Positions 3,585 through 61,286 of a stretch of DNA of 64,000 nucleotides are shown piece by piece (position 1 is the stretch's first letter; the number at the start of each line of letters is the position of its first letter). Source of the DNA: Octopus sinensis. Lineage: Eukaryota. The DNA is taken from the NCBI RefSeq assembly GCF_006345805.1, contig NC_043005.1:29388001-29452000 (forward strand). The letters are read 5' to 3'. The translations under genes and the position numbers were made by a program. The notes beneath the pieces were generated by a model that was given only the letters and a program-made list of their open reading frames with translations, ran no database searches and was not told where the DNA came from.

Positions 3585-5930
3585 ATATCCTCGCACCCCC
3601 ACCATTTACTTCCTCCTCAAAATCCACAAACCTAACAACCCTGTCCGCCCCATCGTATCCGCCTGCAACTGCCCCACCGAACTCATCTCCAGATATCGTG
3701 ACCGTGTCCTTGCCCCCCCTAGTGGCTTCCCCCTCTCACATCCATGACACCAACCACGCGCTTCGTTTGTTCAACTCTTTCTCCTTCCCTCCTGGCCCCT
3801 CTAAACTTCTCTTCACTCTCGACATCCAGTGCATGCACTCCAACATTTCCTTGACCTTCTACCCAACCCCCAACCCGACACATCCACACTCGTTCGTCTG
3901 GCTGAACTTGTCCTCTCACTCAACTGCTTCTCGTTCGCTGGTGATTTTCTACCAGCAGATCTCGGGAGTGGCCATAGGAACGAGAATGGGCCCCAACTAT
4001 GCGAACCTGTTCGTTGGCTACGTTGAGGCCCAAATATTCTCAAGTTTCACTGGTTCCACTCCCGAACTATACGGCCATTATATTGACGACTGTATCGGTG
4101 CGACCTCACTCTCCCGCGAACATCTAGACTCCTTCCTCTCTTTTGTCAAATCTTTCTACCCTACCCTCCACTTCTGCACTATCTTTGATACCTCTGTCTC
4201 CTTTCTTGACATTTCGGTCAGTATTCATCACTCCACTCTCACCACCTCCATCCACTACAAGCACACAGACTCACACTCATAACTCAACTTCTCCTCCTCC
4301 CACCTTAAACACACCAAGCTCTTTATCGCCTATTCCCAATTCCTCTCTCTACGCTGGCTCTGTAGTGACGACCATGACTTTGAGAGTCAGTCTCAACTCA
4401 TGGCTCTCCACTTCTTCGTGCGTGGATATCCCCACACCACTATCCACACCGTCCTTGCCAGAGCACGTTCTGTGCACCGTGCATCTGCTCTCTCCCCCCG
4501 AACCCACCTTGCCGTCTCCCGCCTACCATTTTCCCTCACCTACCACCCCACTACCCTACCTCTCCAATGCACCATTCTCCGAGCTTTCCGGCGACTCAAG
4601 TCCGACCCCTCCACTTCGCACATCTTCCCTAACCGACGCCTCCCCTCTTTCAAACGAGCCCACAACCTACGAGACCTCTTGGTCCACAGCTTCTTCCCTA
4701 ACCCAACTTCTCAACTCGGCTCGTTCCTCTGCTCCCGCCCACGCTGCGGCACTTGCCCTTACCTCTCCAACACCACCCTCCTCACCAGCACCCATCATCG
4801 ACCCTATCACATCACCGACTCCTTCACCTACACTTCTACCAATGTCATCTACTGCATCTCCTGCTCTCTTTGCCCTTCTCTATACATCGGGCAAACGGGA
4901 TGCCGCTTTGCTGACCGGTTCGCGGAACACCTTCGAGACATCCGACTCGGCAATGACACCCCGGTCTCGCGCCATTTCCTCTCTACAGGTCACCCTTTGC
5001 AATACCTGTCCGTCTTCGGATTGTCCTTGCACAGGGGCCATCCGGATTCCCGTTTACGCCGTGAACAGAAATTAATTTTCTCTCTTCGCTCCTTTGCGCC
5101 ACATGGGCTCAACTCTCCTCCCCTCTTCATCTAACCTCCTGCACTCGCCTCTTTCCCTCTCATACCTACTTCCTCCCACCCACCTCTCCTCTCTTGCTCC
5201 GACTCCTACTTCTTCTCTTCACTCCTACTCTCCTCTCTTCTCTTCACTCCTAGCCACCTTCTCCTATCCCCTCCATCGTCACCCCTCCCTCGTAACCCCA
5301 CACCACCCCTACACATTCCAACCCCACCTTCCCTATCTTTCCCATCCCATCCCTTATACCCACTCCCACATACCCCACCTCTACCCCACTCTCTGCCTAC
5401 CCACATACCCCATCCCTACCCACCCCTACCCCACCCTCAGCCTAACCCACACCCCACACTTGCTTTCCCCACCTCCCAACACCATCACACCACACCACAC
5501 CCCACTACACCATACACCACATCACATCACACCACCACGCTCACACAAGCACTGACCACTTCCCAGCCTCACATTTTCACACCTACACATACACTCACGC
5601 CCACGTCATGGTCACCATCCCTCTTCCACACGCACATACATACTCTCTTATACACACACACGCGCACCTTCGTTTTGGGATCACCACTACCTTATTATCA
5701 CCCCTTCATCCTAGCTTTCCTATGTGACCCTTCTGTCCGGCATTCGCCATGATAGATCGCTAGCCACTACATATTCTTCATTTTCTCTCGTTGTTTCTTT
5801 CTGTGCTCCTGTCTGTGGAAGAGCGTAGGCTCGAAACGTTAAAGACTTTTCAATTCCCGAGCGTTAAACTAATACATCTGTTTGTTGTCTACACCACCCG
5901 TCTTCGTCTTTTGTCTTTTGTGAATTCTCC
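3585..5930 (+). mobile_element. Penelope-like retroelement, 5'-truncated (RT + GIY-YIG + pLTR)
   Basis: Translation gives IYFLLKIHKPNNPVRPIVS, GVAIGTRMGPNYANLF, YIDD, then CxxCxxC, VIYCISC..LYIGQTG..RFAEH..E..I..L....P.GLN; pyrimidine/CA-rich 3' region ending in an HHR-like motif. Confidence 0.93.
3590..5134 (+). pseudogene. Disrupted PLE RT/GIY-YIG endonuclease ORF
   Basis: ORFs 3698-4282 and 4400-5134 lie in the same frame and are separated by a TAA at 4280-4282; there is a frameshift near 3700 and an apparent internal deletion in the RT. Confidence 0.85.
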
Positions 5931-11906: not shown

Positions 11907-12134
11907 TGTATGTATATTACTTCAAAAGTTCCCGCAAGCCCATATGTGAAAAAAAAAAATTTTTACGGAAATCGACGGAAATGTCTACTAGAGACGAAAG
12001 ATCGCCTAACATATTTACGAATGCACAGACACATTGACACATTGACACACAGACACATTGACACTCATACTCAACATACACCGAGCATAGAAACAGCCCC
12101 CTCCAACCCATAAAACCACAAGAGCGATAACATG

Positions 12135-12260
12135 GATGGAAGCACTCCGTCGGTTACGACGACGAGGATTCCGGTTGATCCGAATCAACGGAACAGCCTG
12201 CTCGTGAAATTAACGTGTAAGTGGCTGAGCACTCCACAGACACATGTACCCTTTGAAATA
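12135..12260 (-). mobile_element. SINE family C 3' tail fragment
   Basis: CACTCCGTCGGTTACGACGACGAGG...GTGGCTGAGCACTCCACAGACAC is shared with 30144, 46850 and 55810. Confidence 0.8.
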
Positions 12261-12968
12261 GGCACAGAACCACACGTTCAAGGAAAATGGTGTCTCGATA
12301 CTGGGGTACACAACTGTTACTTTATTCTATCGACACTATGAATGAAAGGCATAGTTGATTGGTGGGATTTGAAGTAAGTTCCAGAGGGCACAACACCGCT
12401 ATCCTCTCAGAAACAGTGGGCAGAGAAGATGGATGGACGACCGTTAAAACTCCGTTGATCATTTCTCAGTTTGAACAGAGCCGATCATGAATGAGTTAAG
12501 CAACAGTAACTTAGATAAGACACACAAACTAATTGCAGATATATTATTATGGACATAGAAAAAACCAAAACTCGTGGTTTGTAACTACAGCAAAATATCA
12601 ACGTCAGAGTAAATACAGAATGCTTGGAATAAGTATCTTTATTTTTCTATCGAATCTAACTTCCTCAACTTCTTTCATTTTCAAATTTTCAAATGTACCA
12701 GCGTTCCTGTTGATTATGCTTTCGTTTTGATCACTGGCTCCCAACCAACTCTTGTGACCCTACATCGACGTGTTCTAAATTCTTTTCTGTTTTTCCTTCC
12801 AGATATTCTACACTATTTCTTGTTACCCCTCTAACTCTGTGCCCTTAATATATATACATTCAGTCTTACAAGAAAATATACTGTCTCTGTGTGTCTCTGT
12901 CTCTCTCTGATGACGGCTCCATCTGGAAGTTTAGAACTTTTCTCTTCTTTCAGTTACGTCATATAATT

Positions 12969-15900
12969 TCATCTAGAATTAGATACCACGTATACTCATC
13001 ATTAATTTGATACCATGTATACTCAACTACATTCTGATACCAAGTATATTCATTTACAATCTCATACAAACTATACTCATCTATAATCTAATACCAAGTG
13101 TACTCATCTACAATCTGATACCAAGTATACTCATCTAGAAATAGATACCAAGGATACTCATCAATAATTTGATGCCATGTATACTCATCTACATTCTGAT
13201 ACCAAGTATACTCATCTACAATCTCATACAAACTATGCTCATCTATAATCTGATACCAAGTGTACTCATCTACAATCTGATACCAAGGACTCTCATCTAG
13301 AATTAGATACCAAGGATACTCATCAATAATTTGATACCATGTATACTCATCTACATTCTGATACCAAGTATACTCATCTAGAATTAGATACCAAGGATAC
13401 TCATCAATAATTTGATACCAAGTATACTCATCTAGAATTAGATACCAAGGATACTCATCAATAATTTGATACCATGTATACTCATCTACATTCTGATACC
13501 AAGTATACTCATCTAGGATTAGATACCAAGGATACTCATCAATAATTTGACACCATGTACACTCATCTACATTCTGATACCAAGTATGCTCATCTAGAAT
13601 TTGATGCCATGTAAACTCATCTACATTCTGATACCAAGTATACGCATCTAGAAATTAGATACAAAGTATACTCATCAATAATTTGATACCATGTATACTC
13701 ATCTACATTCTGATACCAAGTATACTCATCTAGAAATAGATACCAAGGATACTCATCAATAATTTGATACCATATATACTCATCTACATTCTGATACCAA
13801 GTATACTCATCTAGAAATAGATACCAAGGATACTCATCAATAATTTGATACCATGTATACTCATCTACAATCTCATACGAACTATACTCATCTATAATCT
13901 GATACCAAGTGTACTCATCTACAATCTGATACCAAGTACTCTCATCTAGAATTAGATACCAAGGATACTCATCAAAAATTTGATACCATGTATACTCATC
14001 TACATTCTGATACCAAGTATACTCATCTAGAATTAGATACCAAGGATACTCATCAATAATTTGATACCAAGTATACTCATCTAGAATTAGATACCAAGGA
14101 TACTCATCAATAATTTGATACCATGTATACTCATCTACATTCTGATACCAAGTATACTCATCTAGAATTAGATACCAAGGATACTCATCAATAATTTGAT
14201 ACCAAGTACACTCATCTACATTCTGATACCAAGTATGCTCATCTAGAATTTGATACCATGTATACTCATCTACATTCTGATACCAAGTATACGCATCTAG
14301 AAATTAGATACCAAGGATACTCATCAATAATTTGATACCATGTATACTCATCTACATTCTGATACCAAGTATACTCATCTAGAAATAGATACCAAGGATA
14401 CTCATCAATAATTTGATACCATGTATTCTCATCTACATTCTGATACCAAGTATACTCATCTAGAATTAGATACTAAGTATACTCATCAATAATTTGATAC
14501 CATGTATACTCATCTACATTCTGATACCAAGTATACCCATATACAATCTCATACCATCTATACTCATCAATAATTTGATACCATGTATACTCATCTACAT
14601 TCTGATACCAAGTATACTCATCTAGAAATAGATACCAAGGATACTCATCAATAATTTGATACCATGTATACTCATGTACATTCTGATACCAAGGATACTC
14701 ATCTAGAATTAGATACCAAGTATACTCATCAATAATTTGATACCATGTATACTCATCTACATTCTGATACCAAGTATACCATATACAATCTCATACCATC
14801 TATACTCATCAATAATTTGATACCATGTATACTCATCTACATTCTGATACCAAGTGTACTGATCTAGAATTAGATACAAGTATACACATCAAAAATCTGA
14901 TACCATGTATACTCATCTACATCTGATACCAAGTATACTCATCTAGAATTAGATACCAAGGATACTCATCAATAATTTGATACCATGTATACTCATCTAC
15001 ATTCTGATACCAAGTACACTCATCTAGAATTAGATAACAAGGATACTCATCAATAATTTGATACCATGTATACTCATCTACAATCGGATACCAAGTATAC
15101 TCATGAAGAATTAGATACCAAGTATACTCATCAATAATTTGATACCATGTATACTCATGTACATTCTGATACCAAGGATACTCATCTAGAATTAGATACC
15201 AAGTATACTCATCAATAATTTGATACCATGTATACTCATCTACATTCTGATACCAAGTATACCCATATACAATCTCATACCATCTATACTCATCAATAAT
15301 TTGATACCATGTATACTCATCTACATTCTGATACCAAGTGTACTGATCTAGAATTAGATACCAAGTATACACATCAAAAATCTGATACCATGTATACTCA
15401 TCTACAATCTGATACCAAGTATACTCATCTAGAATTAGATACCAGGATACTCATCAATAATTGATACCATGTATACTCATCTACATTCTGATACCAAGTA
15501 CACTCATCTAGAATTAGATAACAAGGATACTCATCAATAATTGATACCATGTATACTCATCTACAATCGGATACCAAGTATACTCATGAAGAATTAGATA
15601 CCAAGTATACTCATCAATAATTTGATACCATGTATACTCATGTACATTCTGATACCAAGGATACTCATCTAGAATTAGATACCAAGTATACTCATCAATA
15701 ATTTGATACCATGTATACTCATCTACATTCTGATACCAAGTATACCATATACAATCTCATACCATCTATACTCATCAATAATTTGATACCATGTATACTC
15801 ATCTACATTCTGATACCAAGTGTACTGATCTAGAATTAGATACCAAGTATACTCATCTACAATCTGATACCAACTATATTCATATACAATATGATACCAA

Positions 15901-18900
15901 GTATACTCATCTAGAATTAGATACCAAGGATACTCATCAATAATTTGATACCATGTATACTCATCTACATTCTGATACCAAGTACACTCATCTAGAATTA
16001 GATAACAAGGATACTCATCAATAATTTGATACCATGTATACTCATCTACAATCGGATACCAAGTATACTCATGAAGAATTAGATACCAAGTATACTCATC
16101 AATAATTTGATACCATGTATACACATCTACATTCTGATACCAAGTGTACTCATCTACAATCTCATACCAACTATACTCATCTACAATCTCATACCAAGTA
16201 TACTCATCTACAATCTTATACCAACTATACTCATCTATAATCTGATACCAAGTATACTCATCTACAATCTGATACCAACTATATTCATATACAATATGAT
16301 ACCAAGTATACTCATCTAGAATTAGATACAAGGTATACTCATCAACAATTTGATATCATGTATACTCATCTACATTCTGATACCAAGTATACTCATCTAC
16401 AATCTTATACCAACTATACACATCTATAATCTGATACCATGTATACTCATCTACATTCTGATACCAAGTATACTCATCTAGAATTAGATACCAAGTATAC
16501 TCATCAATAATTTGATACCATGTATACTCATCTACATTCTGATACCAAGTACATTCATCTAGAATTAGATACCAAGTATACTCATCATTAATTGATACCA
16601 TCTATACTCATCTACATTCTGATACCAAATATACTCATCTAGAATTGGATACCAAGATACTCATCATAATTTGATACCATGTATACTCATCTATATTATG
16701 ATACCATGTATACTCATCTAGAATTAGATACCAAGGATACGCTTCAATAATTGATACCATGTATACTCATCTACATTCTGTCACCAAGTATACTCATCTA
16801 CAATTAGATACCAAGGATACTCATCAATAATTTGATACCATGTATACTCATCTACATTCTGATACCATGTATACTCATCTAGAATTAGATACAAAGGATA
16901 CTCATGAATAATTTGATACCATGTATACTCATCTACATTCTGATACCAAGTGTACTCATCTAGAATTAGATACCAAGGATACACATCAATAATTTGATAC
17001 CATGTATACTCATCTACATTCTGATACCAAGTATACTCATCTAGAATTAGATAGAAAGGATACTCATCAATAATTTGATACCATGTATACTCATCTACAT
17101 TCTGATACCAAGTATACTCATCTAGAATTAGATACCAAGGATACTCATCAATAATTTGATACCATGTATACTCATCTACATTCTGATACCAAGTATACTC
17201 ATCTAGAATTAGATAGAAAGGATACTCATCAATAATTTGATACCATGTATACTCATCTACATTCTGATACCAAGTATACTCATCTAGAATTAGATACCAA
17301 GTATACTCACCAATAATTTGATACCATGTATACTCATGTACATTCTGATACAAAGTATACTCATCTAGAAATAGATACCACGTATACTCAATAATTTGAT
17401 ACCAAGTATACTCATCTACATTCTGATACCAAGTATACTCATCTACAATCTCAAACGAACTATACTCATGTATAATCTGATACCAAGTATACTCATCTAG
17501 AATTTGATACCACGTATACTCATCATTAATTTGATACCATGTATACTCATTTACATTCTGATACCGAGTATACTCATGTACTATCTCATACCAACTATAC
17601 TCATCTACAATCTGATACCAAGTATACTCATCTACATTCTGATACCAAGTATACTCATCTAGAATTAGATACCAAGTATACTCATCAATAATTTTATACC
17701 ATGTATACTCATCTACATTCTGATACCAAGTATACTCATCTAGAATTAGATACCAAGGATACTCATCAATAATTTGATACCATGTATACTCATCTACATT
17801 CTGATACCAAGTGTACTCATCTACAATCTCATACCAACTATACTCATCTACAATCTGATACCAAGTATACTCATCTACAATCTTATACCAACTATACTCA
17901 TCTATAATCTGATACCAAGTATACCCATCTACAATCTGATACCAACTATACTCATCTACAATCTGATACAAATTATACTCATCTATAATTAGTTACCAAG
18001 GATACTCATCAATAATTTGATACCATGTATACTCATCTACATTCTGATACCAAGTATACTCATCTGCAATCTCATACCATCTATACTCATCTACAATCTG
18101 ATACCAAGTATACTCATCTAGAATTAGATACCAAGGATACTCATCAATAATTTGATACCAAGTATACTCATCTAGAATTAGATACCAAGGATACTCATCA
18201 ATAATTTGATACCATGTATACTCATCTACATTCTGATACCAAGTATACTCATCTAGAATTAGATACCAAGGATACTCATCAATAATTTGATACCAAGTAC
18301 ACTCATCTACATTCTGATACCAAGTATGCTCATCTAGAATTTGATACCATTTATACTCATCTACATTCTGATACCAAGTATACGCATCTAGAAATTAGAT
18401 ACCAAGGATACTCATCAATAATTTGATACCATGTATACTCATCTACATTCTGATACCAAGTATACTCATCTAGAAATAGATACCAAGGATACTCATCAAT
18501 AATTTGATACCATGTATTCTCATCTACATTCTGATACCAAGTATACTCATCTAGAATTAGATACTAAGTATACTCATCAATAATTTGATACCATGTATAC
18601 TCATCTACATTCTGATACCAAGTATACCCATATACAATCTCATACCATCTATACTCATCAATAATTGATACCATGTATACTCATCTACATTCTGATACCA
18701 AGTATACTCATCTAGAAATAGATACCAAGGATACTCATCAATAATTTGATACCATGTATACTCATGTACATTCTGATACCAAGTATACTCATCTAGAATT
18801 AGATACCAAGTATACTCATCAATAATTTGATACCATGTATACTCATCTACATTCTGATACCAAGTATACCCATATACAATCTCATACCATCTATACTCAT

Positions 18901-21900
18901 CAATAATTTGATACCATGTATACTCATCTACATTCTGATACCAAGTGTACTGATCTAGAATTAGATACCAAGTATACACATCAAAAATCTGATACCATGT
19001 ATACTCATCTACAATCTGATACCAAGTATACTCATCTAGAATTAGATACCAAGGATACTCATCAATAATTTGATACCATGTATACTCATCTACATTCTGA
19101 TACCAAGTACACTCATCTAGAATTAGATAACAAGGATACTCATCAATAATTTGATACCATGTATACTCATCTACAATCGGATACCAAGTATACTCATGAA
19201 GAATTAGATACCAAGTATACTCATCAATAATTTGATACCATGTATACACATCTACATTCTGATACCAAGTGTACTCATCTACAATCTCATACCAACTATA
19301 CTCATCTACAATCTGATACCAAGTACTCATCTACAATCTTATACCAACTATACTCATCTATAATCTGATACCAAGTATACTCATCTACAATCTGATACCA
19401 ACTATATTCATATACAATATGATACCAAGTATACTCATCTAGAATTAGATACCAGTATACTCATCAACAATTTGATATCATGTATACTCATCTACATTCT
19501 GATACCAAGTATACTCATCTACAATCTTATACCAACTATACACATCTATAATCTGATACCATGTATACTCATCTACATTCTGATACCAAGTATACTCATC
19601 TAGAATTAGATACCAAGTATACTCATCAATAATTTGATACCATGTATACTCATCTACATTCTGATACCAAGTACATTCATCTAGAATTAGATACCAAGTA
19701 TACTCATCATTAATTTGATACCATCTATACTCATCTACATTCTGATACCAAATATACTCATCTAGAATTGGATACCAAAGATACTCATCAATAATTTGAT
19801 ACCATGTATACTCATCTATATTATGATACCATGTATACTCATCTAGAATTAGATACCAAGGATACGCTTCAATAATTTGATACCATGTATACTCATCTAC
19901 ATTCTGTCACCAAGTATACTCATCTACAATTAGATACCAAGGATACTCATCATAATTTGATACCATGTATACTCATCTACATTCTGATACCAAGTACACT
20001 CATCTAGAATTAGATAACAAGGATACTCATCAATAATTTGATACCATGTATACTCATCTACAATCGGATACCAAGTATACTCATGAAGAATTAGATACCA
20101 AGTATACTCATCAATAATTTGATACCATGTATACACATCTACATTCTGATACCAAGTGTACTCATCTACAATCTCATACCAACTATACTCATCTACAATC
20201 TCATACCAAGTATACTCATCTACAATCTTATACCAACTCTACTCATCTATAATTGATACCAAGTATACTCATCTACAATTGATACCAACTATATTCATAT
20301 ACAATATGATACCAAGTATAACATCTAGAATTAGATACAAGGTATACTCATCAACAATTTGATATCATGTATACTCATCTACATTCTGATACCAAGTATA
20401 CTCATCTACAATCTTATACCAACTATACACATCTATAATCTGATACCATGTATACTCATCTACATTCTGATACCAAGTATACTCATCTAGAATTAGATAC
20501 CAAGTATACTCATCAATAATTTGATACCATGTATACTCATCTACATTCTGATACCAAGTACATTCATCTAGAATTAGATACCAAGTATACTCATCATTAA
20601 TTTGATACCATCTATACTCATCTACATTCTGATACCAAATATACTCATCTAGAATTGGATACCAAAGATACTCATCAATAATTTGATACCATGTATACTC
20701 ATCTATATTATGATACCATGTATACTCATCTAGAATTAGATACCAAGGATACGCTTCAATAATTTGATACCATGTATACTCATCTACATTCTGTCACCAA
20801 GTATACTCATCTACAATTAGATACCAAGGATACTCATCAATAATTTGATACCATGTATACTCATCTACATTCTGATACCATGTATACTCATCTAGAATTA
20901 GATACAAAGGATACTCATGAATAATTTGATACCATGTATACTCATCTACATTCTGATACCAAGTGTACTCATCTAGAATTAGATACCAAGGATAAACATC
21001 AATATTTGATACCATGTATACTCATCTACATTCTGATACCAAGTATACTCATCTAGAATTAGATAGAAAGGATACTCATCACAATAATTTGATACCATGT
21101 ATAACATCTACATTCTGATACCAAGTATACTCATCTAGAATTAGATACCAAGGATACTCATCAATAATTTGATACCATGTATACTCATCTACATTCTGAT
21201 ACCAAGTATACTCATCTAGAATTAGATAGAAAGGATACTCATCAATAATTGATACCATGTATACTCATCTACATTTGATACCAAGTATACTCATCTAGAA
21301 TTAGATACCAAGTATACTCACCAATAATTGATACCATGTATACTCATGTACATTCTGATACAAAGTATACTCATCTAGAAATAGATACCACGTATACTCA
21401 ATAATTTGATACCAAGTATACTCATCTACATTCTGATACCAAGTATACTCATCTACAATCTCAAACGAACTATACTCATGTATAATCTGATACCAAGTAT
21501 ACTCATCTAGAATTTGATACCACGTATACTCATCATTAATTTGATACCATGTATACTCATTACATTCTGATACCGAGTATACTCATGTACTATCTCATAC
21601 CAACTAACTCATCTACAATCTGATACCAGTATACTCATCTACATTCTGATACCAAGTATACTCATCTAGAATTAGATACCAAGTATACTCATCATTAATT
21701 TGATACCATGTATACTCATCTACATTCTGATACCAAGTATACTCATCTAGAATTAGATACCAAGGATACTCATCAATAATTTGATACCATGTATACTCAT
21801 CTACATTCTGATACCAAGTGTACTCATCTACAATCTCATACCAACTATACTCATCTACAATCTGATACCAAGTATACTCATCTACAATCTTATACCAACT

Positions 21901-24900
21901 ATACTCATCTACAATATGATACCAAGTATACCCATCTACAATCTGATACCAACTATACTCATCTACAATCTGATACAAATTATACTCATCTATAATTAGT
22001 TACCAAGGATACTCATCAATAATTTGATACCATGTATACTCATCTACATTCTGATACCAAGTATACTCATCTGCAATCTCATACCATCTATACTCATCTA
22101 CAATCTGATACCAAGTATACTCATCTAGAATTTGATACAACGTATACTCATCATAATTTGATACCATGTATACTCATCTACATTCTGATACCAAGTATAC
22201 TCATCTAGAATCTGACACCAAGTATACTCATCTAGAATTAGATCCCACGTATACTCATCAATAATTTGATACCATGTATACTCATCTACATTCTGATACC
22301 ACGTATACTCATCTACAATCTCATACAAACTATACTCTTCTATAATCTGATACCAAGTATACTCATCTACAATCTCATACCAACTATACTCATCTAGAAT
22401 CTGATACCAAGTATACTAATCTAGAATTTGATACCACGTATACTCATCATTATTTGATACCATGTATACTCATCTACATTCTGATACCAAGTATACTCAT
22501 CTACAATCTATACCAACTATACTCGTCTACAATCTAATACCATGTATATTCATCTACAATCTGACACCAAGTATACTCATCTAGAATTAGATACCAAGTA
22601 TACTCATCAATAATTTGATACCACGTATACTCATCTACATTCTGATATCAAGTATACTCATCTACAATCTCATACCAACTATACTCATCTATAATTGATA
22701 CCAAGTATACTCATCTACAATATGATACCAAGTATACTCATCTAGAATTTGATACCAAGTATACTCATCAATAATTTGATACCACGTATACTCATCTACA
22801 TTCTGATATCAAGTATACTCATCTACATTCTGATACCAAGTATACTCATCTACAATCTGATACCAACTATACTCATCTACAATCTAATACCAAGTATACT
22901 CATCTACAATTGACACCAAGTATACTCATCTAGAATTAGATACCAAGTATACTCATCAATAATTTGATACCACGTATACTCATCTACATTCTGATATCAA
23001 GTATACTCATCTACAATCTCATACCAACTATACTCATCTATAATTGATACCAAGTATACTCATCTACAATATGATACCAAGTATACTCATCTAGAATTTG
23101 ATACAAAGTATACTCATCATTAATTTGATACCATGTATACTCATCTACATTCTGATACCAAGTATACTCATCTACATTCTGATACCAAGTATACTCATCT
23201 ACAATCTTATACCAACTATACTCGTCTACAATCTAATACCAAGTATACTCATCTACAATCTGACACCAAGTATACTCATCTAGAATTAGATACCAAGTAT
23301 ACTCATCAATAATTTGGTACCATGTATACTCATCTACATTCTGATATGAAGTATACTCATCTTCAATCTCATACGAACTATACTCATCTACAATCTGATA
23401 CCAAGTATACTCATCTACAATCTGATACCAAGGATACTCATTTAGAATTAGATACCAAGTATACTCATCAATAATTTGATACCATGTATATTCTTCTACA
23501 TTCTGATAATAAGTATACTCATCTACAATCTCATATCAACTATACTCATCTACAATCTGATACAAAGTATACTCATCTAGAATTAGATATCACGTATACA
23601 TATCAATAATTTGATACTACGTATACTCGTCTACATTCTGATACCAAGTATACTCAGCTACAATCTCATAAAAACTATACTCATCTAGAATTGATACCAG
23701 TATACTCATCTACAATCAGATACCATGTATACTCATCTAGAATTTGATACCACGTATACTCATCATTAATTTGATACCATGTATACTCATCTACATTCTG
23801 ATACCAAGTATACTCATCTACAATCTCATGCCAACTATGCTCATCTAGAATTTAATACTAAGTATACTCATCTACAATCTGATACCAAGTATACTCATCT
23901 AGATTTTGATACCACGTATACTCATCATTAATTGATACCATGTATACTCATCTACATTCTGATACCAAGTAAACTCATCTATAATCTCATACCAACTATA
24001 TTCATCTAGAATCTGATACCAAGTATTCTCATCTACAATCTCATACCAACTATACTCATCTATAATCTGATACTAAGTATACTCATCTACAATCTGATAC
24101 TAAGTATACTCATCTAGAATTAGATACCAAGTATACTCATCAATAATTTGATACCATGTATACTCATCTATATTCTGATACCAAGTATACTCATCTACAA
24201 TCTCATACCAACTATACTCATCTATAATCTGATACCAAGTATACTCATCTACAATCTGATACCGCGTATACTCATCTAGAATTTGATACCGCGTATACTC
24301 ATCATTAATTTGATACCATGTATACTCATCTACATTCTGATACAAAGTATACTCATCTAGAAATAGATACCACGTATACTCAATAATTTGATACCAAGTA
24401 TACTCATCTACATTCTGATACCAAGTATACTCATCTACAATCTCAAACGAACTATACTCATGTATAATCTGATACCAAGTATACTCATCTAGAATTTGAT
24501 ACCACGTATACTCATCATTAATTTGATACCATGTATACTCATTTACATTCTGATACCGAGTATACTCATGTACTATCTCATACCAACTATACTCATCTAC
24601 AATCTGATACCAAGTATACTCATCTACATTCTGATACCAAGTATACTCATCTAGAATTAGATACCAAGTATACTCATCAATAATTTTATACCATGTATAC
24701 TCATCTACATTCTGATACCAAGTATACTCATCTAGAATTAGATACCAAGGATACTCATCAATAATTTGATACCATGTATACTCATCTACATTCTGATACC
24801 AAGTGTACTCATCTACAATCTCATACCAACTATACTCATCTACAATCTGATACCAAGTATACTCATCTACAATCTTATACCAACTATACTCATCTATAAT

Positions 24901-27900
24901 CTGATACCAAGTATACCCATCTACAATCTGATACCAACTATACTCATCTACAATCTGATACAAATTATACTCATCTATAATTAGTTACCAAGGATACTCA
25001 TCAATAATTTGATACCATGTATACTCATCTACATTCTGATACCAAGTATACTCATCTGCAATCTCATACCATCTATACTCATCTACAATCTGATACCAAG
25101 TATACTCATCTAGAATTTGATACAACGTATACTCATCATTAATTTGATACCATGTATACTCATTTACATTCTGATACCAAGTATACTCATCTAGAATCTG
25201 ACACCAAGTATACTCATCTAGAATTAGATCCCACGTATACTCATCAATAATTTGATACCATGTATACTCATCTACATTCTGATACCACGTATACTCATCT
25301 ACAATCTCATACAAACTATACTCTTCTATAATCTGATACCAAGTATACTCATCTACAATCTCATACCAACTATACTCATCTAGAATCTGATACCAAGTAT
25401 ACTAATCTAGAATTTGATACCACGTATACCCATCATTAATTTGATACCATGTATACTCATCTACATTCTGATACCAAGTATACTCATCTACAATCTTATA
25501 CCAACTATACTCGTCTACAATCTAATACCATGTATATTCATCTACAATCTGACACCAAGTATACTCATCTAGAATTAGATACCAAGTATACTCATCAATA
25601 ATTTGATACCACGTATACTCATCTACATTCTGATATCAAGTATACTCATCTACAATCTCATACCAACTATACTCATCTATAATTTGATACCAAGTATACT
25701 CATCTACAATATGATACCAAGTATACTCATCTAGAATTTGATACAAAGTATACTCATCATTAATTTGATACCATGTATACTCATCTACATTCTGATACCA
25801 AGTATACTCATCTACATTCTGATACCAAGTATACTCATCTACAATCTTATACCAACTATACTCGTCTACAATCTAATACCAAGTATACTCATCTACAATC
25901 TGACACCAAGTATACTCATCTAGAATTAGATACCAAGTATACTCATCAATAATTTGGTACCATGTATACTCATCTACATTCTGATATGAAGTATACTCAT
26001 CTTCAATCTCATACGAACTATACTCATCTACAATCTGATACCAAGTATACTCATCTACAATCTGATACCAAGGATACTCATTTAGAATTAGATACCAAGT
26101 ATACTCATCAATAATTGATACCATGTATATTCTTCTACATTCTGATAATAAGTATACTCATCTACAATCTCATATCAACTATACTCATCTACAATCTGAT
26201 ACAAAGTATACTCATCTAGAATTAGATATCACGTATACATATCAATAATTTGATACTACGTATACTCGTCTACATTCTGATACCAAGTATACTCAGCTAC
26301 AATCTCATAAAAACTATACTCATCTAGAATCTGATACCAAGTATACTCATCTACAATCAGATACCATGTATACTCATCTAGAATTTGATACCACGTATAC
26401 TCATCATTAATTTGATACCATGTATACTCATCTACATTCTGATACCAAGTATACTCATCTACAATCTCATGCCAACTATGCTCATCTAGAATTTAATACT
26501 AAGTATACTCATCTACAATCTGATACCAAGTATACTCATCTAGATTTTGATACCACGTATACTCATCATTAATTTGATACCATGTATACTCATCTACATT
26601 CTGATACCAAGTAAACTCATCTATAATCTCATACCAACTATATTCATCTAGAATCTGATACCAAGTATTCTCATCTACAATCTCATACCAACTATACTCA
26701 TCTATAATCTGATACTAAGTATACTCATCTACAATCTGATACTAAGTATACTCATCTAGAATTAGATACCAAGTATACTCATCAATAATTTGATACCATG
26801 TATACTCATCTATATTCTGATACCAAGTATACTCATCTACAATCTCATACCAACTATACTCATCTATAATCTGATACCAAGTATACTCATCTACAATCTG
26901 ATACCGCGTATACTCATCTAGAATTTGATACCGCGTATACTCATCATTAATTTGATACCATGTATACTCATCTACATTCTGATACCAAGTATACTCATCT
27001 ATAATCTCATACAACTATACTCATCTAGAATGTGATACCAAGTATACTCATCTACAATCTTATACCAACTATACTCATCTATAATCTGATACCAAGTATA
27101 CTCATATACAATCTGATACCAAGTATACTCATCTAGAATTAGATACAAAGTATACTCATCAATAATTTGATACCATGTATACTCATCTACATTGTGATAC
27201 CAAGTGTACTCATCTACAATCTCATACCAACTATACTCATCTAGATCTGATACCAACTATACTCATCTACAATGTGATACCAAGTATACTCATCTAGAAT
27301 TAGATACCAAGTATACTTATCAATAATTTGATACCATGTATACTCATCTACATTCTGATACCAAGTATACTTATCTACAATCTAATACCACGTATACTCA
27401 TCATTAATTTGATACCATGTATACTCATCTACATTCTGATACCAAGTATACTCATCTACAATCTCATACCAACTATACTCATCTATAATCTGATACCAAG
27501 TATTCTCATCTAGAAACTGATACCAAGTATACTCATCTAGAATCTGATACCAAGTATACTCATCTAGAATTTGATACCAAGTATACTCATCAATAATTTG
27601 ATACCATGTATACTCATCTACATTCTGATACCATGTATACTCATCTACAATCTCATACCAACTATACTCATCTAGAATCTGATACCAAGTATCCTCATCT
27701 ACAATCTGATACCAAGTATACTCATCTAGAATTTGAAACCAAGTATACTCATCAATAATTTAATACCATGTATACTCATCTACATTCTGATACCAAGTAT
27801 ACTCATCTACAATCTCATACCCACTATACTCATCTATAATCTGATACCAAGTATACTCATCTAGAAACTGATACCAAGTATACTCATCTAGAATCTGATA

Positions 27901-28783
27901 CCAAGTATACTCATCTAGAATTTGATACCAAGTATACTCATCAATAATTTGATACCATGTATACTCATCTACATTCTGATACCATGTATACTCATCTACA
28001 ATCTCATACCAACTATACTCATCTAGAATCTGATACCAAGTATACTCATCTACAATCTGATACCAAGTATACTCATCTAGAATTTGAAACCAAGTATACT
28101 CATCAATAATTTAATACCACGTATACTCATCTACATTCTGATACCAAGTATACTCATCTACAATCTCATACCAACTATACTCATCTAGAATGTGATACCA
28201 AGTATACTCATCTACAATCTCATACCAACTATACTCATCTAGAATCTGATACCAGCTATACTCATCTACATTCTGTTAGCAAGTATACTCATCTAGAATA
28301 TGATACCAAGTATACTCATCAATAATTTGATACCATGTATACTCATCTACATTCTGATACCAAGTATACTCATCTACAATCTCATACCAACTATACTCAT
28401 CTATAATCTGATGCCAAGTATACTCATCTAGAATTAGATACCATGTATACTCATCAATAATCTGATACCAGTTATACTCATCTACATTCTGATACCAAGT
28501 ATACTCATCTACAATCTCATACCAACTATACTCATCTAGAATCTGATACCAAGTATACTCATCTACAATCTGATACCAAGTATACTCATCTAGAATTAGA
28601 TACCACGTATACTCATGAATAATTTGATAGCATGTATACTCATCTCCATTCTGATTCCAAGTATACTCATCTACAATCTGATACCAAGTATACTCATCCA
28701 GTATTAGATACCACGCATACTCATCAATAATTTGATACCATGTATACTCATCTACATTCTGATACCAACTATACTCATCAATA
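12969..28783. repeat. 27-bp tandem array (~585 units) with higher-order structure
   Basis: Unit approx. GATACCAAGTATACTCATCTACAATCT with recurrent variants (...TAGAATTA, ...TACATTCT, ...CAATAATTT); 9-aa periodicity in the ORF track; no TE or microsatellite insertion seen inside. Confidence 0.98.
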
Positions 28784-28844
28784 AAAAAACAAATTAAAAC
28801 AATGAAGGATTTCGGAAAATGGCTTATTTTTTCTTTTACTTGTT

Positions 28845-29050
28845 TCAGTCATTTGACTGTGGCCATGCTGGGGCACCACCTAGAATAATTTATTTTTTTC
28901 AGTTGAATGAATCCACCCCAGCACTTATTATTTATTAAAGCCCAGTACTTATTCTATCAGTCTATTTTGCTGAAGTGCTAAGTTATGAGGACAGACATAA
29001 ACCCACCAACACTGATTGTCAAGTGGTGATGGGGGACAAACACAGACACA
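28845..29050 (-). mobile_element. SINE family A 3' fragment
   Basis: CTTGTTTCAGTCATTTGACTGTGGCCATGCTGG is the reverse complement of the family A tail. Confidence 0.75.
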
Positions 29051-29295
29051 AAGTCACACACATAGCTATATATATATATATATAAAATAAGGGTGAAAAA
29101 ATTGGATATTAATTTAATAACATCAATTTAACACCAAGTGGTTTAGCGCATAAAAACTAGGATTCAGTAAATATTAATACACAAATATAAGAGAGAATCC
29201 TTGAGAACAATTCTTGGTGGTTGAGACCATTGCGGATCTATTTTTAGCGCAAGAGCGTCCACATAGTGGATTCTCTCTTATATTTGTGTGAATAT

Positions 29296-30144: not shown

Positions 30145-30497
30145 TGACACTCAGTCGGTTACGACGACGAGGGTTCCAGTTGATCCGATCAATGGAACAT
30201 CCTGCTCGTGAAATTAACGTGTAAGTGGCTGAGCACTCCACAGACACGTGTACTCTTTACGTAGTTCCCGGGGAGATTCACGTGACAAGGCTACGACAGA
30301 AACAGGAAGAAAGAGTGAGGGAAAGTTGTGGTGAAAGTGTACAGCATGGTTCGCCACCCCTCAGCCCCCCGCCAGATCCTCGTGCAGCTTTAGGTGTTTT
30401 CGCTCGATATACACTCACAACGCCCGGTCTAGGAATCGAAACCGCGATCCTACGACCGCGAGTCGCTGCCCTAACTATTGGACCATTGCGCCTCCAC
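30144..30497 (-). mobile_element. tRNA-derived SINE, family C
   Basis: Reverse complement of the 46604-46957 copy; head GTGGAGGCGCAATGG..AGTGGTTAGGG, B-box-like GGTTTCGATTCC. Confidence 0.88.
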
Positions 30498-38609: not shown

Positions 38610-39345
38610 ACACACATGACAGAAGTAAATAGACACCCTTATAATCATTAAAATTTATTTAAATTTGAAATTATTTATTCATATTATTTATTAATTGTTA
38701 TAACGTAAATATTTAATATTTAGTAGATATGCCCTTTGCATTTTTCAATGCAAGGACCCTATTAGGCATATTACTGATCAGATGGTGACTATTCTCTAGC
38801 GGAATTTCTTGCTAAGTTTCATGCAGTTAATCTCAAAAGAACTGGCTTTGAAGATGCTTTCCTGTTCTTTTCATGAAGTGTCCTGTCCATTATGTCCTAT
38901 AGGTGTTCAATAGGGTTCACATCTGGTGACTGGGTTGGCAATGGAAGCTTTTTAATGCCATTCTCATCCAGCAAATCTTGGGTCATTTTAAGCGTGTGAC
39001 AAGGAACCCCATCATCCATAAATAGTCTTCTTTAATCATTTCACCATTGGAGAAGATTGGAAGGAGTTCTTTCTGCAATACGGACATGTATTTGAGTTTA
39101 TGTTTCCCTCACACTCCACCAGCCCTGATCAACCATTGCTCCAAATTGCTCCCCAGACCATCACAGAATAGCTGCCGTGTTTGATTGTTGACTGCAATCT
39201 TTTCACATCAAATTCTTGATCACAGAGTTTCCAGACCCACACTCGACCACTGTCAGGAAATACAGCAAATTTGGACTCATCAGAGGTTATGACAGTGTCC
39301 CAAAATCCTAGTGGCCTCTGCACCATCTCACTGGCCCAAATCATG
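38610..39345 (-). mobile_element. Tc1-family transposon, 3' part with one TIR
   Basis: VITSDESKF, VMVWGAI, FMDDGVPCH, PSQSPDVNPIEHL (DD34E-type); terminal CACATGACAGAAGTAAATAGACACCCT at ~38612-38639. Confidence 0.88.
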
Positions 39346-40848: not shown

Positions 40849-42691
40849 GGTGCTAGGACAATTCGTTCCTGGTTATTTCGTCGTCGGTTAATTAGACCCC
40901 GATCAATCCGTCGTTGATCAATTCATTTCCAGGTCAATTCGTCCCCAAATACTCTTAAATGTGGTTTTCGAGGGAAAGTTTAGAACAATCATTTTAGAAT
41001 TAAAATTGTCGTTGGGCAATTTTAGATATTTTTTTCCTTTCTTTAACCCACCTCTTCTCTCAAGTTTCTGCGCTGAACAGTTTACGAACAAATATTTTCA
41101 AGTAAATCGAATTAAATTTATTCAATACGCTTGCCCATCAACATGACTGCTTGCAAGATCATAACTTCAGAGAAAGGAAAAATCTAAGTGGTCGATTAAG
41201 AAAATTATACATGCACAAAAAATAAGCAGAATGCAGATGGATTGAAGATATACTGGAGGTGCGAAAATCATGTATGCAAGGCGAGGCTTCATACAGATGA
41301 AACTATAAAGACCTTAAGATGACTGGGATCCATAATCACGCTTCAACTACTGTAGAGGTAAATGCAAGGATAATAGTTTCAAATATCAAAGTCTATTTCA
41401 TCTCGTGATGCTCCGCTCTCAATTATCGCTAGTGAAGTTCAGAATTTAAACCACTCTACATTGTCGCAAATACATCCGTTTGCACAGCTTAATAGGAATA
41501 TTAGACGTCGGAGGCAAGTTGATTCCAGCACTCCTGCCCACCCCCCACTTACAAATGTTGGGTTTTCCATTCCAAGTGAATACTTGTACCTTGACAATGA
41601 TGAAACGTTTTTAAAGTATAACAGCGGGATGGAAGATTCAAAACGAATAACTAGTATTTGCAAGTGACGAAGCACTTCGACAGTTAAAACAGTACAAGAA
41701 CTGGGTGACAGATGGAACATTAAAGAGCTGCTCTAGTATATTTTTTCAGTTATATATACTTCACATTCAAATTGATAATTTTAATGTCCCACGATTGTTC
41801 ACATTGCTCTCTGACAAAACTCAAAACATATAGTAGACTTTTTGCCAAAATAAATGAATTACTATAGAATGAGGGACCTTATAATATAATTATGGATTTC
41901 GAAAAAGCAGCACATAATGGATTTCTGGAATCGTTTCTGAGGTCATATTTGGCATGCTGCTTGTTTCATTTAGGACAAAATGTGTACAAGCATGTCGTGC
42001 AAGAAGGACTAAAATGCAGATATCATGAAGATGACAGTTTTAGTCCCAAAATGCGGTGTTTTGTTGCCCTTGTTTTACAGCCAGCTAATGATGTTGCAGA
42101 TGGATATGAACAACTTGTAGATGATGATGATATTCCTCAGTCAAATTGTATCCTATTTTGAAAATAATTATATAGGACCACCTAGAGGAAGAGGACAGAG
42201 GAGGCGATGCCTTGAACCGCCATTTCTATTACCTATATGGAATGTTTGGGATCGAAGTATGACAGGGATTGCTGGTACTACAAATAGTTTAGAAGCCTAA
42301 CACAGGTCGCTGAAAAACACAGTGATTATCAGCCATCCAAGTACTTGGAAATTTATTGATGTGATTAAATGTGAGGAAAGGTTTGCCAGTACCAAATTGC
42401 AGAAATTTATGCAAGGAGGAGAACCATGCCAAAAGAAAAAATACAGAGATATGAACCTGCGTATAAAGAATGTCATAGCAGAATTATTTTTCTAAAAGCA
42501 ATTGCAGACAATCTTAAACTTTAGGAAAAAATAAATATGTAATACAGCAAACCTTCAAATAAACGTTTTTTTTAAAATTCAGATATTCGTTCTTCGATTT
42601 TTCCTATGATCTCGACGAATTGACCTGGGACGAATTGACCAACGACGAACTGCCCGGGGACGAATTAACCGACGACAAATTGACCGACACC
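40849..42691 (+). mobile_element. MULE (Mutator-like, Phantom-type) transposon with decayed transposase
   Basis: YWRCENHVCKARLHT..H.H zinc finger; DGTLK, MDFEKAA, CLFHLGQ, TTNSLEA*H; GGTG...CACC termini with subterminal repeats; GTTCACAC/ATTCACAC flanks. Confidence 0.9.
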
Positions 42692-49049: not shown

Positions 49050-49475
49050 ACGTTAGATAGCCTCGCACACTCCAACACATATGCAAACGTCCACATACGC
49101 ACACACCACTCCCTGCGCGCACGCATTTGTTTACTCACACATATATTCATACGCATGCACTCGCCCACACACACATATGCGCACGCACACATTATCCTCA
49201 CATACACTCACATACTTGCGAGCGCACACTTTAGACAGGTTGCTGTTGTCTCCCTCGCCACCCTTGTCTCCAATAACTTCCTTTCTTCAGGTTAGTTCAA
49301 CTTGTGCAACCGTTAATTCAGACACGTTTCCCCCACTCTCCATCAGCTTTCTTTCCTTTGTGTAGAATAGCATAGGTTCGAAACGTCAACGACTCTTCCA
49401 TTATTCCTGAGTGTCAAATTGATATACCACCTTTGTTTTTCTCCCACTTGTTCTTTGGTTTTTGTACGATTTTGA
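49050..49475 (+). mobile_element. Old PLE pLTR fragment with degenerate HHR (49355-49392)
   Basis: Colinear with 5580-5920; ...AGAATAGCATAGGTTCGAAACGTCAACGAC. Confidence 0.65.
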
Positions 49476-49487
49476 ATCATATATATA

Positions 49488-50140
49488 CGAGGGTAAGTCA
49501 AAAATTACCGCACTTTTGCCATGACATACCTTTATTATTGTCACACTGCCTTCTGCGCATGCGTGCTTATACTCGGTACTCTTGTGGTCACACTGCTACT
49601 ATTGCGGTGGTATTGTGGTCACGAAGTTTGAACCTGATCGCGCTGTTTTTCTTTCTCGCTTTACAGTGTAAGGATGGCCGCTCCACTAGCAGTAAGCACC
49701 AAAGAAGAACAAAGAGCAGTGATTCGATTTCTTTGGAAAAGTGGTGTACGATCAACATTGCAAGATACAGTGCTTTACTGGCCAACAAACTGAAGCTAGC
49801 AATTCGCACCAAACGCCGAAGCCTGTCGTCGAAGAAAGTTTTGTTGCATGACAACGCCCAGACCGTTGAAACCATTAACCGATTGGGTTTTGAGGTGCTG
49901 AAACACCCTGCAAACAGCTTAGTCTATCATATCTTTGGACCGTCCAAAGATGGTTTACGACGTCGTCGATTTCCTATGGATGAAGCTGTGAAGGAAGCAG
50001 TGCATAAATGGTTGCACGACCAACTGAAAACCCTCTTCTTGGAGGGAGTACGCAAACTTGTGGACCGCTGGACTAAGTGTATCGAAAAGGAAGGAGACTA
50101 TATAGAAAAATGATATACTTGTTTATCCCCTGCTTTTGTG
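49488..50140 (+). mobile_element. Mariner transposon A, internally deleted
   Basis: TA|CGAGGG terminus; MAAPLAVSTKEEQRAVIRFLW N-terminus fused to LLHDNA..HP....YHIFG..WTKCIEKEGDYIEK. Confidence 0.88.
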
Positions 50141-50159
50141 TGAATACATTGAAAAAAAA

Positions 50160-50662
50160 AACAACACAGGTGTTGATGAGTGGTTGAATAAACAAATCCA
50201 AGCTTCTCTGCTAGTTCCTCAACAGTTACGATGGGATTTTGTTCCACCAGAGTTTTCAAAACGCCCTCGTCGAGCTCTACATATCTTCCAGTACGAGGCT
50301 CGTCTTCTAGGCTGTAGTTTCCGGCTCGGAATTTCTTGAACCACCGTTGACATTCGCTTACGCATATTGTCCAATCCCCATATACTGCATTAATATTCCT
50401 CGCACTTTTCGCTATGATGTTGCCTTTATTGAATTCATAAAGCAAAATATGCCAAATATGCTCCTTTGCCACTCGCATTATAGCTTTGAAAAAATAACTA
50501 TTAACATCGAACTGCACTCTTCAAAACTTGCACTAAGAATAAATACAAGGTGAAATTACTACCTGCTTTTATGGCAATTTGATGCAGGTAGTTGATCCTG
50601 TCCCCCTGTGACTTTTAATTCATGCAATTGAAAAAAACCGCATTATTTACGGGATGACCCAA
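50160..50662 (-). mobile_element. Mariner transposon B, 5' half
   Basis: TA|TTGGGTCATCCCGTAAATAATGCGG terminus; HIWHILLYEF, CQRWFKKFRAGNYSLEDEPRTGR, VEELAEKLG helix-turn-helix region. Confidence 0.88.
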
Positions 50663-50820: not shown

Positions 50821-50907
<87 letters not shown>

Positions 50908-51199
50908 AATGATGATAATAATTCATGGATGGAATTTATAAACATTTTAACGCATCACTACGCGCGTTTGCACAAATCGCGTTTCTTTTTTATCCTAGTT
51001 CGTATTCTTGAGATGTTTATAGCTCAGACCGTAGTATCCATGGACATCGGGTGGATTATAGTTCATGTGCTCATTTCATTGGGGGATATGGCACTAACGT
51101 TGGAAGCAACGAATGTATAACCGAAGGATGCTTATCAATTTTCACCAATCAAAAGCTTGATTGGTGTATGTAGGCAGTTTTGTGTATAATTGATAGGGA

Positions 51200-52650: not shown

Positions 52651-52711
<61 letters not shown>

Positions 52712-52714
52712 TAC

Positions 52715-52789
<75 letters not shown>

Positions 52790-52799
52790 TGAATATAAC

Positions 52800-53083
52800 G
52801 GTGTAGAGATGTGTAGGGTAGAGGATGATACGCAGCGGAAGGTGGGACGTGTATGGTGTGTGGAGGTGGGTTTAGGTCAAGAGAGACGACGAAGTGAAAC
52901 AGAAGAATGAAGAGAGAATATAAATTTCTGCTCTCTACGGAGGGGGGAATCCGGGTGGCCTCTGTACAAAGCCAGTCCGGACACACAGACACAGATGTGG
53001 CGAATGACCAGTCGAGTGGCGGTGATACGCGACCGGGGTGATATTTCCGACTCTGATGTCCCGAAGATGTTCAAGATACAATG

Positions 53084-53139
<56 letters not shown>

Positions 53140-61039: not shown

Positions 61040-61249
61040 TTTCTACTATAGGTACAAGGCCTGAAATTTTGGGGAAGGGACTAGTCGATTACATCCACCC
61101 CAGTACGCAACTGGTACTTACCTTATCGACCCCGAAAGGATGAAAAGCAAAGTCGACCTCGGCGGAATTTGAACTCAGAACGTAAGGACAGACAAAATGC
61201 CGCGAAGCATTTCCCCGGCGTGCTAATGATTTTGCCAGCTTGCCGCCTT
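61040..61249 (-). mobile_element. SINE family B, full length
   Basis: Head AAGGCGGCAAGCTGGCAAAATCATTAG, B-box-like GAGTTCAAATTCC, core CTTTTCATCCTTTCGGGGTCGATAA, (ATT)n tail. Confidence 0.85.
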
Positions 61250-61286
61250 AATAATAATAACAATAATGATAATAATAATAATAATC

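Follow-up and report, generated by a model that had tools for sequence, protein, structure and literature searches.

Tandem arrays of the kind described here are common in animal genomes, and a few known systems offer points of comparison. Minisatellites are typically GC-rich, and the hypervariable ones of humans have been studied by variant-repeat mapping. Alpha satellite has a nucleosome-sized unit and forms arrays on the megabase scale. Bivalve satellites are often associated with transposable elements, and an origin from the internal or terminal repeats of such elements is common among mollusc satellites. For octopods, no description or catalogue of satellite DNA was found in the searchable literature.

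The locus that we analysed is a tandem array of 27-bp units in Octopus sinensis, contained in a window of 64,000 nucleotides (contig NC_043005.1, positions 29,388,001 to 29,452,000) to which all coordinates below refer. Its units run head to tail in a single orientation and show no coding constraint, which places it among satellites and minisatellites. A centromeric satellite would have a roughly nucleosome-sized unit, extend over megabases and bind CENP-A; this array is 15.8 kb long, has a 27-bp unit and is bordered within the window by ordinary sequence on both sides.

Results

TRF reported one array at positions 12969-28784 (period 27, 587.4 copies, 81% matches, score 18238), and a separate anchor parse counted 587 units. 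Both counts agree with the original prediction, which had proposed about 585 tandem 27-bp units over 12969-28783. The array is AT-rich, with a GC content of about 31%, and the minus-strand consensus of the unit is GATGAGTATACTTGGTATCAGATTGTA. The distances from anchor to anchor were 27 bp in 539 cases, 26 bp in 31, 24 bp in three, 28 bp in three and 25 bp in two, and the four distances of 53-55 bp represent two units with one anchor damaged. This distribution of spacings implies that inserted sequence never amounts to more than a few bases, and the array has no interruption beyond the length of two units. In the window, the unit 20-mer had 548 matches at up to 3 mismatches where 0.02 are expected by chance, and all among the matches listed lie on the minus strand. 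A looser scan allowing up to 4 errors gave 8456 minus-strand matches and 4 plus-strand ones, each of the latter lying outside the array. Neither scan found convincing matches to the unit elsewhere in the window.

Across all unit types, 18 of the 27 positions of the unit are more than 90% conserved and variation is limited to 9 positions. The unit has no 9-bp sub-period, as the observed autocorrelation at lag 9 was reached by 79% of shuffles, and no clear gradient of divergence runs along the array that would indicate degeneration of its edges. Its tendency to form hairpins or cruciforms is ordinary (DNA folding z of 0.2 to -1.3). The junctions with unique sequence are clean on both sides.

The surrounding stretch of the octopod genome is poor in genes and rich in TEs and microsatellites. 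It had been proposed that the array carries no SINE, LINE or microsatellite while its flanks carry about one repeat per kb, and this contrast is real. Mono- to tetranucleotide runs of 12 bp or more are absent from the array, whereas the 48 kb of flanks contain 36 dispersed-repeat segments of at least 60 bp (about 0.75 per kb) and have a microsatellite density above one per kb (103 TRF rows, some of them overlapping). Remnants of Penelope-like, mariner and SINE-like elements occur in the window; the Penelope-like ORF gave matches at 46% identity only. The octopod origin of the stretch was deduced indirectly from the mariner ORF and from flank repeats that also occur at an Octopus sinensis locus. 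An old SINE-like repeat at 28825-29084 begins 40 bp beyond the right edge of the array. When copies in the window were compared, it was 68-72% identical to four other full-length copies, with one 51-bp piece reaching 90%, and it is 72% identical to a copy at an Octopus sinensis locus. It lies outside the array, and we used it as a yardstick of age. In the left flank, some 700 bp away from the array, is a dispersed repeat (12132-12254) that shares 93% identity with a copy at 30148-30258; it is not a terminal repeat of the array.

Five unit types, QNV (125 units), QII (111), LIL (84), QIV (49) and EIV (47), together make up 416 of the 587 units (71%). The unit-type string and the identity between units at different lags divide the array into two domains. 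The left domain (12969-22300) is dominated by a higher-order repeat, an 81-bp trimer that reads QNV-QII-LIL on the minus strand, and from about 13000 to 22300 this lag-3 periodicity is accompanied by superperiods of 9, 18, 24 and 33 units. It is also overlaid by copies of a segment from the right domain. The right domain (22300-28784) is a mixture of QIV, EIV, QIL, KIV, HIV and QIN with the three main types, arranged in periods of 6, 13 and 14 units. Identity at lag 3, lag 18 and lag 33 is 0.89-0.93, compared to 0.78-0.81 at lag 1. The trimer, the periods of 6-33 units and the multi-kb duplicates described next are the marks of higher-order organisation and concerted evolution.

Nearly the whole array, 552 of its 587 units, belongs to long duplicates within the array whose unit-by-unit identity is about 95-96% or higher, with lags of 2646, 2997, 3132, 4023, 4104 and 7020 bp. 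By nucleotide alignment, five of the longest duplicate pairs differ by 1.4-2.2% substitutions. The longest duplicate (88 units, 19871-22232) pairs with 15858-18226 (lag 4023 bp, 1.5% substitutions); another of 69 units at 24223-26082 pairs with 21243-23091 (lag 2997 bp, 1.7%), and one of 63 units at 25381-27079 pairs with 22743-24435 (lag 2646 bp, 1.4%). Of the 236 substitution differences between duplicates, 126 exchange one allele for another where each of the two is frequent among the units, and transitions account for only 40 of 147 mismatches. Switching between alleles together with so few transitions is better explained by conversion or type switching than by point mutation. Set against the much greater divergence of the neighbouring SINE from its relatives, the low divergence of the duplicates shows that the array either is young or turns over rapidly; relative to that SINE it is young. 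Indels and stops common to the duplicates show that the array has grown by copying.

These results agree with most of what the original prediction had said about the organisation of the array, namely a small number of discrete unit types, a trimer in the left half with longer mixed periods in the right, and a young or actively homogenised array, to which the little-diverged duplicates, the lack of insertions and the divergent adjacent SINE all point. Its expected restriction ladders can be compared to the computed sites. For BstZ17I (GTATAC, 386 sites) the commonest spacing is 27 bp (233), followed by 54 bp (84), which is the ladder of about 27 bp that had been anticipated. For XbaI (TCTAGA, 136 sites) the expectation of multiples of 27 was correct, but the peak is not at 54-81 bp; the commonest spacing is 81 bp (37), then 162, 54 and 108, putting the computed peaks at 81 and 162.

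Discussion

We consider it likely, and with good confidence, that this AT-rich tandem array, with its minisatellite-sized unit and satellite-sized length, is non-coding and arose as a side effect of recombination and replication. Nothing that we found in it points to a function encoded by the sequence, and it may well be neutral under selection. Its growth took place in three nested layers. A 27-bp monomer first gave rise to a few variants, groups of these variants were co-amplified as higher-order repeats (the 81-bp trimer on the left and sets of 6-14 units on the right), and blocks of 1.3-2.4 kb were finally duplicated inside the array at several offsets. Turnover most likely proceeds by unequal exchange, between sister chromatids or homologues, together with gene conversion between units. 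The absence of transposon and microsatellite insertions from the array is then due to this turnover or simply to its youth.

One alternative is that the array derives from a transposon, in which a tandem repeat located inside the element or at its end (Helitron, MITE or SINE tail) would have expanded. In its favour, TE remnants are abundant in the window, and TE links are frequent among bivalve satellites (PMC8268682). However, when 3 kb of each flank were compared on both strands, no TIRs, LTRs or direct repeats were found to bracket the array, and the only sequences that the two flanks share are microsatellites and ordinary dispersed copies, the latter not collinear. The unit also has no significant similarity to anything in the 48 kb of flanks. 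Lacking both bracketing repeats and any likeness between unit and flanks, a TE-internal repeat was rejected within the window, and we regard a TE derivation of the array as improbable.

The original prediction had not recognised the unit, and our searches lead to the same result, with no catalogued match in Rfam, protein databases, Pfam, PDB, metagenome and viral collections or the searchable literature. In particular, no exact match to the unit 20-mer was found in JGI metagenome or IMG/VR contigs, no ORFs of the array are on record in the assembly collection, and the literature gave no string match to the unit sequence or to the flanking SINE. A more ambitious view would make this the first described octopod-specific satellite family, present at many loci and with a role at the level of the chromosome, such as association with centromeres or enrichment on a sex chromosome, in which the 18 conserved positions would form a putative protein-binding box. 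We think that this is unlikely to be the case.

Other doubts could be associated with the assembly. The exact length of the array rests on a long-read assembly that has signs of imperfect polishing. The 1-bp deletions are mostly private to one duplicate, lie in homopolymers and are concentrated in the centre of the array, with 21 of 35 in its central third (P=0.001). Deletions with these properties are probably assembly errors for the most part, and they mark a locally under-polished assembly. It could be argued from this that the array is real but that its size and duplicate structure are partly an artefact of mis-joined or over-expanded long reads or of merged haplotypes. There is about one private 1-bp indel per two substitutions between duplicates, which is odd for true divergence, and the centre where the deletions gather is the hardest place to anchor reads. 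Such an artefact should however leave near-identical blocks at one lag, while we see several distinct lags, 1.4-2.2% divergence and structured shared variants, as well as clean junctions with unique sequence at both ends. An artefact of this type is thus quite unlikely.

A further possibility is that a giant exon, still active or lately dead, encodes here on the minus strand a protein of 9-residue repeats (DEYTWYQxx), with frameshifts that are assembly errors. The unit length equals 9 codons, one frame is free of stops in every abundant unit type, and from a reading of the edge sequence this minus-strand frame terminates with TGA exactly at the array boundary. The mostly private, central homopolymer deletions would then perhaps be artefacts that break a genuine frame. 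Against this, in-frame stops occur in 40 units, and in 35 of these the stop is common to the paralogous unit of a duplicate (about 17 independent events). Stops shared in this way must be real and predate the duplications; sequencing noise does not account for them. Duplicates likewise have in common a +1 unit and a -1 double unit that break the frame. No run of units without a stop exceeds 69, even with indels left out of account, and each of the six frames has at least 253 stops, with a longest open stretch of 403 codons. The pattern of changes also does not look like that of a protein. Trp-to-stop changes make up 25 of 74 substitutions at the two relevant positions of the Trp codons, about the one third expected by chance, and rare variants at conserved codons number 87, 134 and 82 for positions 1, 2 and 3, with no excess at the third. 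An open frame is itself unsurprising, as 3 of the 6 circular frames of the consensus are open and at least one is open in 99% of shuffled 27-mers.

No protein homologs of the translated array were found in the indexed protein search, Pfam or PDB, and the 111 HMMER matches are unrelated 9-residue repeats that agree at 3-5 of 9 residues. The closest of the likenesses is to a STELLO-domain protein (P0021, GCA_021962125.1), which has a 27-bp period, a partial DEY..Q overlap and, with the phases best aligned, a DNA identity of 66%. That array differs in having about 28 units, a GC-richer composition and a position inside an annotated exon, and since it was picked as the best among 1.8 billion proteins its likeness is not evidence of homology. 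From the inherited stops, the codon-position pattern, the chance open frame and the lack of homologs we rejected a coding tandem-repeat exon; this reading is largely refuted and we hold it to be very unlikely. The array is non-coding, and the peptide shorthand for its units is a label only. Several of the database proteins matched by the translated array appear to be 27-bp-type repeats within gene models.

A structured RNA or tRNA-derived element was also rejected, with no Rfam family at gathering score and no tRNA anywhere in the window. Least probable of all is a functional satellite (centromere-associated, a small-RNA source or a chromatin boundary) with an invariant GATGAGTAT...TGGTAT core as a putative protein-binding box. 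The more than 90% conservation at 18 of 27 positions in all types could reflect a bound motif, but recent descent from few founder variants predicts the same pattern equally well, and for a centromere 15.8 kb amid ordinary flanks rich in TEs is small.

Taken alone, the array is of little import and gives no pointer to function. It does provide a clean example of three-layer array growth, and it shows how 27-bp repeats can masquerade as 9-residue "proteins". In practical terms it is a candidate for a hypervariable marker and cytogenetic probe for octopods.

We can now return to the known systems. Like the satellites of the Crassostrea gigas satellitome (PMC8268682), the array belongs to a mollusc genome where tandem arrays are scattered among transposable elements; it differs from bivalve satellites in that its host is an octopod and the window shows no link between it and a TE. 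With primate alpha satellite it shares the progression from monomer to higher-order repeat to larger duplicated blocks, and in both the higher-order copies are more alike than neighbouring monomers. It departs from alpha satellite in its 27-bp rather than nucleosome-sized unit, in its kb rather than Mb scale, and in that centromeric signs are absent from the window. Compared to typical minisatellites it is far longer (587 units, 15.8 kb), is AT-rich instead of GC-rich and does not contain a Jeffreys-type core. Nevertheless, it resembles the human hypervariable minisatellites known from variant-repeat mapping in its unit, which is within the range of 10-60 bp, and in its few interspersed variant types, and it is similar to minisatellites and VNTRs in being a single euchromatin-like locus among dispersed repeats that has apparently grown by unequal exchange and conversion.

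Structure of the array

The 27-bp repeat forms one array. Tandem Repeats Finder placed it at 12969..28784 (period 27; 587.4 copies; 81% matches; score 18238). An independent parse keyed on a 9-base anchor found 583 anchors, spaced by 27 bp (539 times), 26 bp (31), 24 bp (3), 28 bp (3), 25 bp (2) and 53-55 bp (4), and splitting the double units brought the count to 587, in agreement with the roughly 585 units originally predicted. A 20-mer of the unit, with up to three mismatches allowed, matched 548 times against 0.02 expected from shuffles, and the matches listed were on the minus strand throughout. A looser scan gave 8456 minus-strand matches against 4 on the plus strand, all 4 of them outside the array. 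No convincing copy of the unit was found in the window beyond the array. The prediction of an insertion-free block between repeat-rich flanks was also borne out: the anchor parse met no interruption above a few bases and simple-sequence runs of at least 12 bp are absent inside, whereas self-comparison alone places 36 dispersed-repeat segments of at least 60 bp in the 48 kb of flanks, where Tandem Repeats Finder also reports numerous microsatellite loci. G and C make up about 31% of the array, whose strong strand skew stems from the unit's own composition. Its single-strand folding is unremarkable, and no clear gradient of divergence runs along it.

The minus-strand consensus of the unit is GATGAGTATACTTGGTATCAGATTGTA. 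Of its positions, eighteen are over 90% invariant, and the common variation lies almost wholly at nine (10-12, 19-21, 23, 25 and 27). With peptide shorthand as labels for the DNA variants, the types are QNV (125 units), QII (111), LIL (84), QIV (49), EIV (47) and QIL (34); the few discrete types proposed earlier, the first five of these, make up 71% of units. The proposed division into an 81-bp trimer on the left and longer mixed periods on the right was recovered as well. In the left half (about 13000-22300) the QNV-QII-LIL trimer prevails, with a unit identity of 0.87-0.89 at lag 3 against 0.78-0.81 at lag 1, and superperiods of 9, 18, 24 and 33 units reach an identity of up to 0.93; the top lags of the right half are 6, 13 and 14 units. 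The computed BstZ17I sites (GTATAC, 386) are spaced mostly by 27 bp (233) and next by 54 bp (84), which is the ladder of about 27 bp that had been anticipated. For XbaI (TCTAGA, 136 sites) the anticipated multiples of 27 bp were found, but the peak at 54-81 bp only in part, the computed order being 81 (37 spacings), 162, 54 and 108 bp.

Inside the array, runs of 20-88 units recur, about 95-98% identical at the unit level, with lags of 4023, 2997, 2646, 3132, 4104, 891 and 7020 bp, and 552 of the 587 units lie in at least one of these internal duplicates. Nucleotide alignment of five of the longest pairs gives 1.4-2.2% substitutions. Only 40 of the 147 mismatches between aligned duplicates are transitions, and 126 of 236 substitution differences exchange one allele that is common in the array for another. 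Given these switches and the few transitions, much of the divergence looks like conversion or unit-type switching, not new point mutation.

Neighbouring elements and a possible transposon origin

The array could be derived from a transposable element, several of which lie in its flanks, but we consider this unlikely. Comparison of the two 3-kb flanks found no inverted or direct terminal repeats around the array; what the two have in common is microsatellites and non-collinear dispersed copies of an ordinary kind, 87-93% identical. The unit resembles no other sequence in the window, and no Rfam family or tRNA was found there. Full-length relatives elsewhere in the window are 68-72% identical to a SINE-like copy at 28825-29084, 40 bp off the right edge, which is thus far more diverged than the internal duplicates are. 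The array is young relative to such neighbouring insertions, and the idea of a young or actively homogenised array therefore holds. A 21-kb O. sinensis locus, chosen for a mariner-related gene, shares dispersed repeats, this SINE included, with many flank sites at 72-95% identity.

A Penelope-like remnant with GIY-YIG relatives lies at 3698-5134 (plus strand), and a diverged second copy, 68-69% identical to it, at 52909-53627 (minus). Their translated ORFs, read by eye, carry a YIDD-type RT motif; no Pfam domain was found in them, and the homologs of the GIY-YIG region, at 46% identity, include several with Pfam GIY-YIG. Decayed mariner-type transposase fragments occupy 49433-50517, with Pfam HTH_48 on the minus strand (50098-50517) and an adjoining plus-strand ORF (49433-50113) that is transposase-like by eye, with no Pfam support. 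Among named proteins, those closest to the mariner ORF are SETMAR-like ones from Octopus sinensis and O. bimaculoides. Together with the repeats shared with the O. sinensis locus, this places the window in an octopod or a close relative. As DNA, the minus-strand mariner part is 80% identical to a chromosomal copy in Octopus sinensis. Its identity to contigs of the JGI "metagenomes" 3300007188 and 3300002938, which show no further likeness to the window, is 87% and 79%, respectively. Two short transposase-like ORFs, at 41892-42161 (plus) and 39129-39344 (minus), gave no Pfam match at E up to 1; by their motifs they look MULE-like and Tc1-like. Di-, tri- and tetranucleotide repeats occur at extreme density across both flanks. 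AAT/TTA microsatellites of up to about 140 copies lie at 62823-63243, 52651-52788, 61249-61383 and 50821-50922, and small tandem duplications at 57143-57351 (C/T-rich 111-bp unit, 1.9 copies) and 42613-42688 (15/30-bp CGACGAATTGACCGA repeat, about 5 copies).

Assembly quality

The size or structure of the array could also be partly an artefact of assembly, which we think quite unlikely. Three kinds of indel, a 3-bp deletion (three copies), a unit longer by one base (three copies) and a double unit shorter by one base (two copies), recur across duplicates and are therefore real. About 35 single-base deletions are nearly all private to one duplicate, the partner units being 27 bp long. Most of them cut down an AAA or TT run, and 21 of the 35 (26-bp units) fall in the central third (18241-23513; binomial P=0.001). 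Between duplicates there is about one indel per two substitutions, which is atypical of real divergence. These private deletions are probably errors in the long-read consensus, made in the stretch of the array where anchoring is most difficult, with very recent slippage as the alternative.

Coding potential

The peptide labels of the original prediction, and a unit length of nine codons, raised the question of coding. The array is not protein-coding. None of the six frames has fewer than 253 stops, and no stretch stays open for more than 403 codons. Column-by-column alignment places an in-frame stop in 40 units, 35 of which share it with their paralogous unit in an internal duplicate; these shared stops are about 17 real mutations, copied later. 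Because stops are inherited between duplicates, treating the deletions as assembly errors does not rescue a coding reading, and even with all indels disregarded, stop-free runs extend no further than 69 units. The two Trp-codon positions at which a change can create a stop carry 74 substitutions; 25 of these, about one third, turn Trp into a stop, which is the chance proportion. Within the conserved codons, rare variants total 87 at codon position 1, 134 at position 2 and 82 at position 3, the opposite of a coding pattern. Three of the six circular frames of the consensus are open, but at least one is open in 99% of composition-matched shuffles, so an open frame is uninformative. A dead or mis-assembled coding exon is thus very unlikely. 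The array junctions (12940-12975 and 28780-28800) show two further features: in plus-strand reading, a polypyrimidine tract and then "cag" precede the left one, much like a splice acceptor, and the minus-strand frame of the units meets TGA right after the last unit. Both are likely chance in AT-rich DNA.

A 396-residue ORF from the array had no match among 5.8 billion proteins in an indexed search, none in the PDB and a sub-threshold one only in Pfam. Exhaustive HMMER search with the array translation gave 111 matches. Six were read in sequence, and all are 9-residue tandem repeats of another kind (GLDEYSGNQ, LLGPSYTWH, SHQIIDPAT, EPEYAWLGT, ITWYQRLDP and SIDELSWDP). Homology to such proteins was rejected, as they have 3-5 of nine residues in common with the array and their scores are inflated by periodicity, which multiplies them. 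The best of these reaches 66% DNA identity, which, for a match chosen out of 1.8 billion sequences, is not evidence of homology. Periodic queries draw very small HMMER E-values from gene models with 9-residue repeats without homology. Long runs of perfect 9-residue repeats occur in the public gene models P0021, P0022, P0024, P0028, P0037 and P0043, and P0021 joins its repeat to a genuine domain (STELLO). The sole case read as DNA, locus L005 (3040-3770; GCA_021962125.1, JAGDYQ010000097.1), is a 27-bp minisatellite.

Origin and class

The array is a single-orientation tandem with three nested levels of repetition that descend by copying, free of coding constraint. It most likely grew by unequal exchange at several registers, with gene conversion between units acting alongside. 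The array appears to have no sequence-encoded function, and we regard a functional satellite as extremely improbable. Satellites are undescribed for the octopod lineage in the literature searched: the most detailed octopus repeat annotation consulted (PMC13282606) leaves them unmentioned, and pairing satDNA with an Octopus species name returned nothing relevant. The array is apparently uncatalogued, and in kind it belongs to an ordinary class, that of non-coding satellites or long minisatellites with higher-order repeats.
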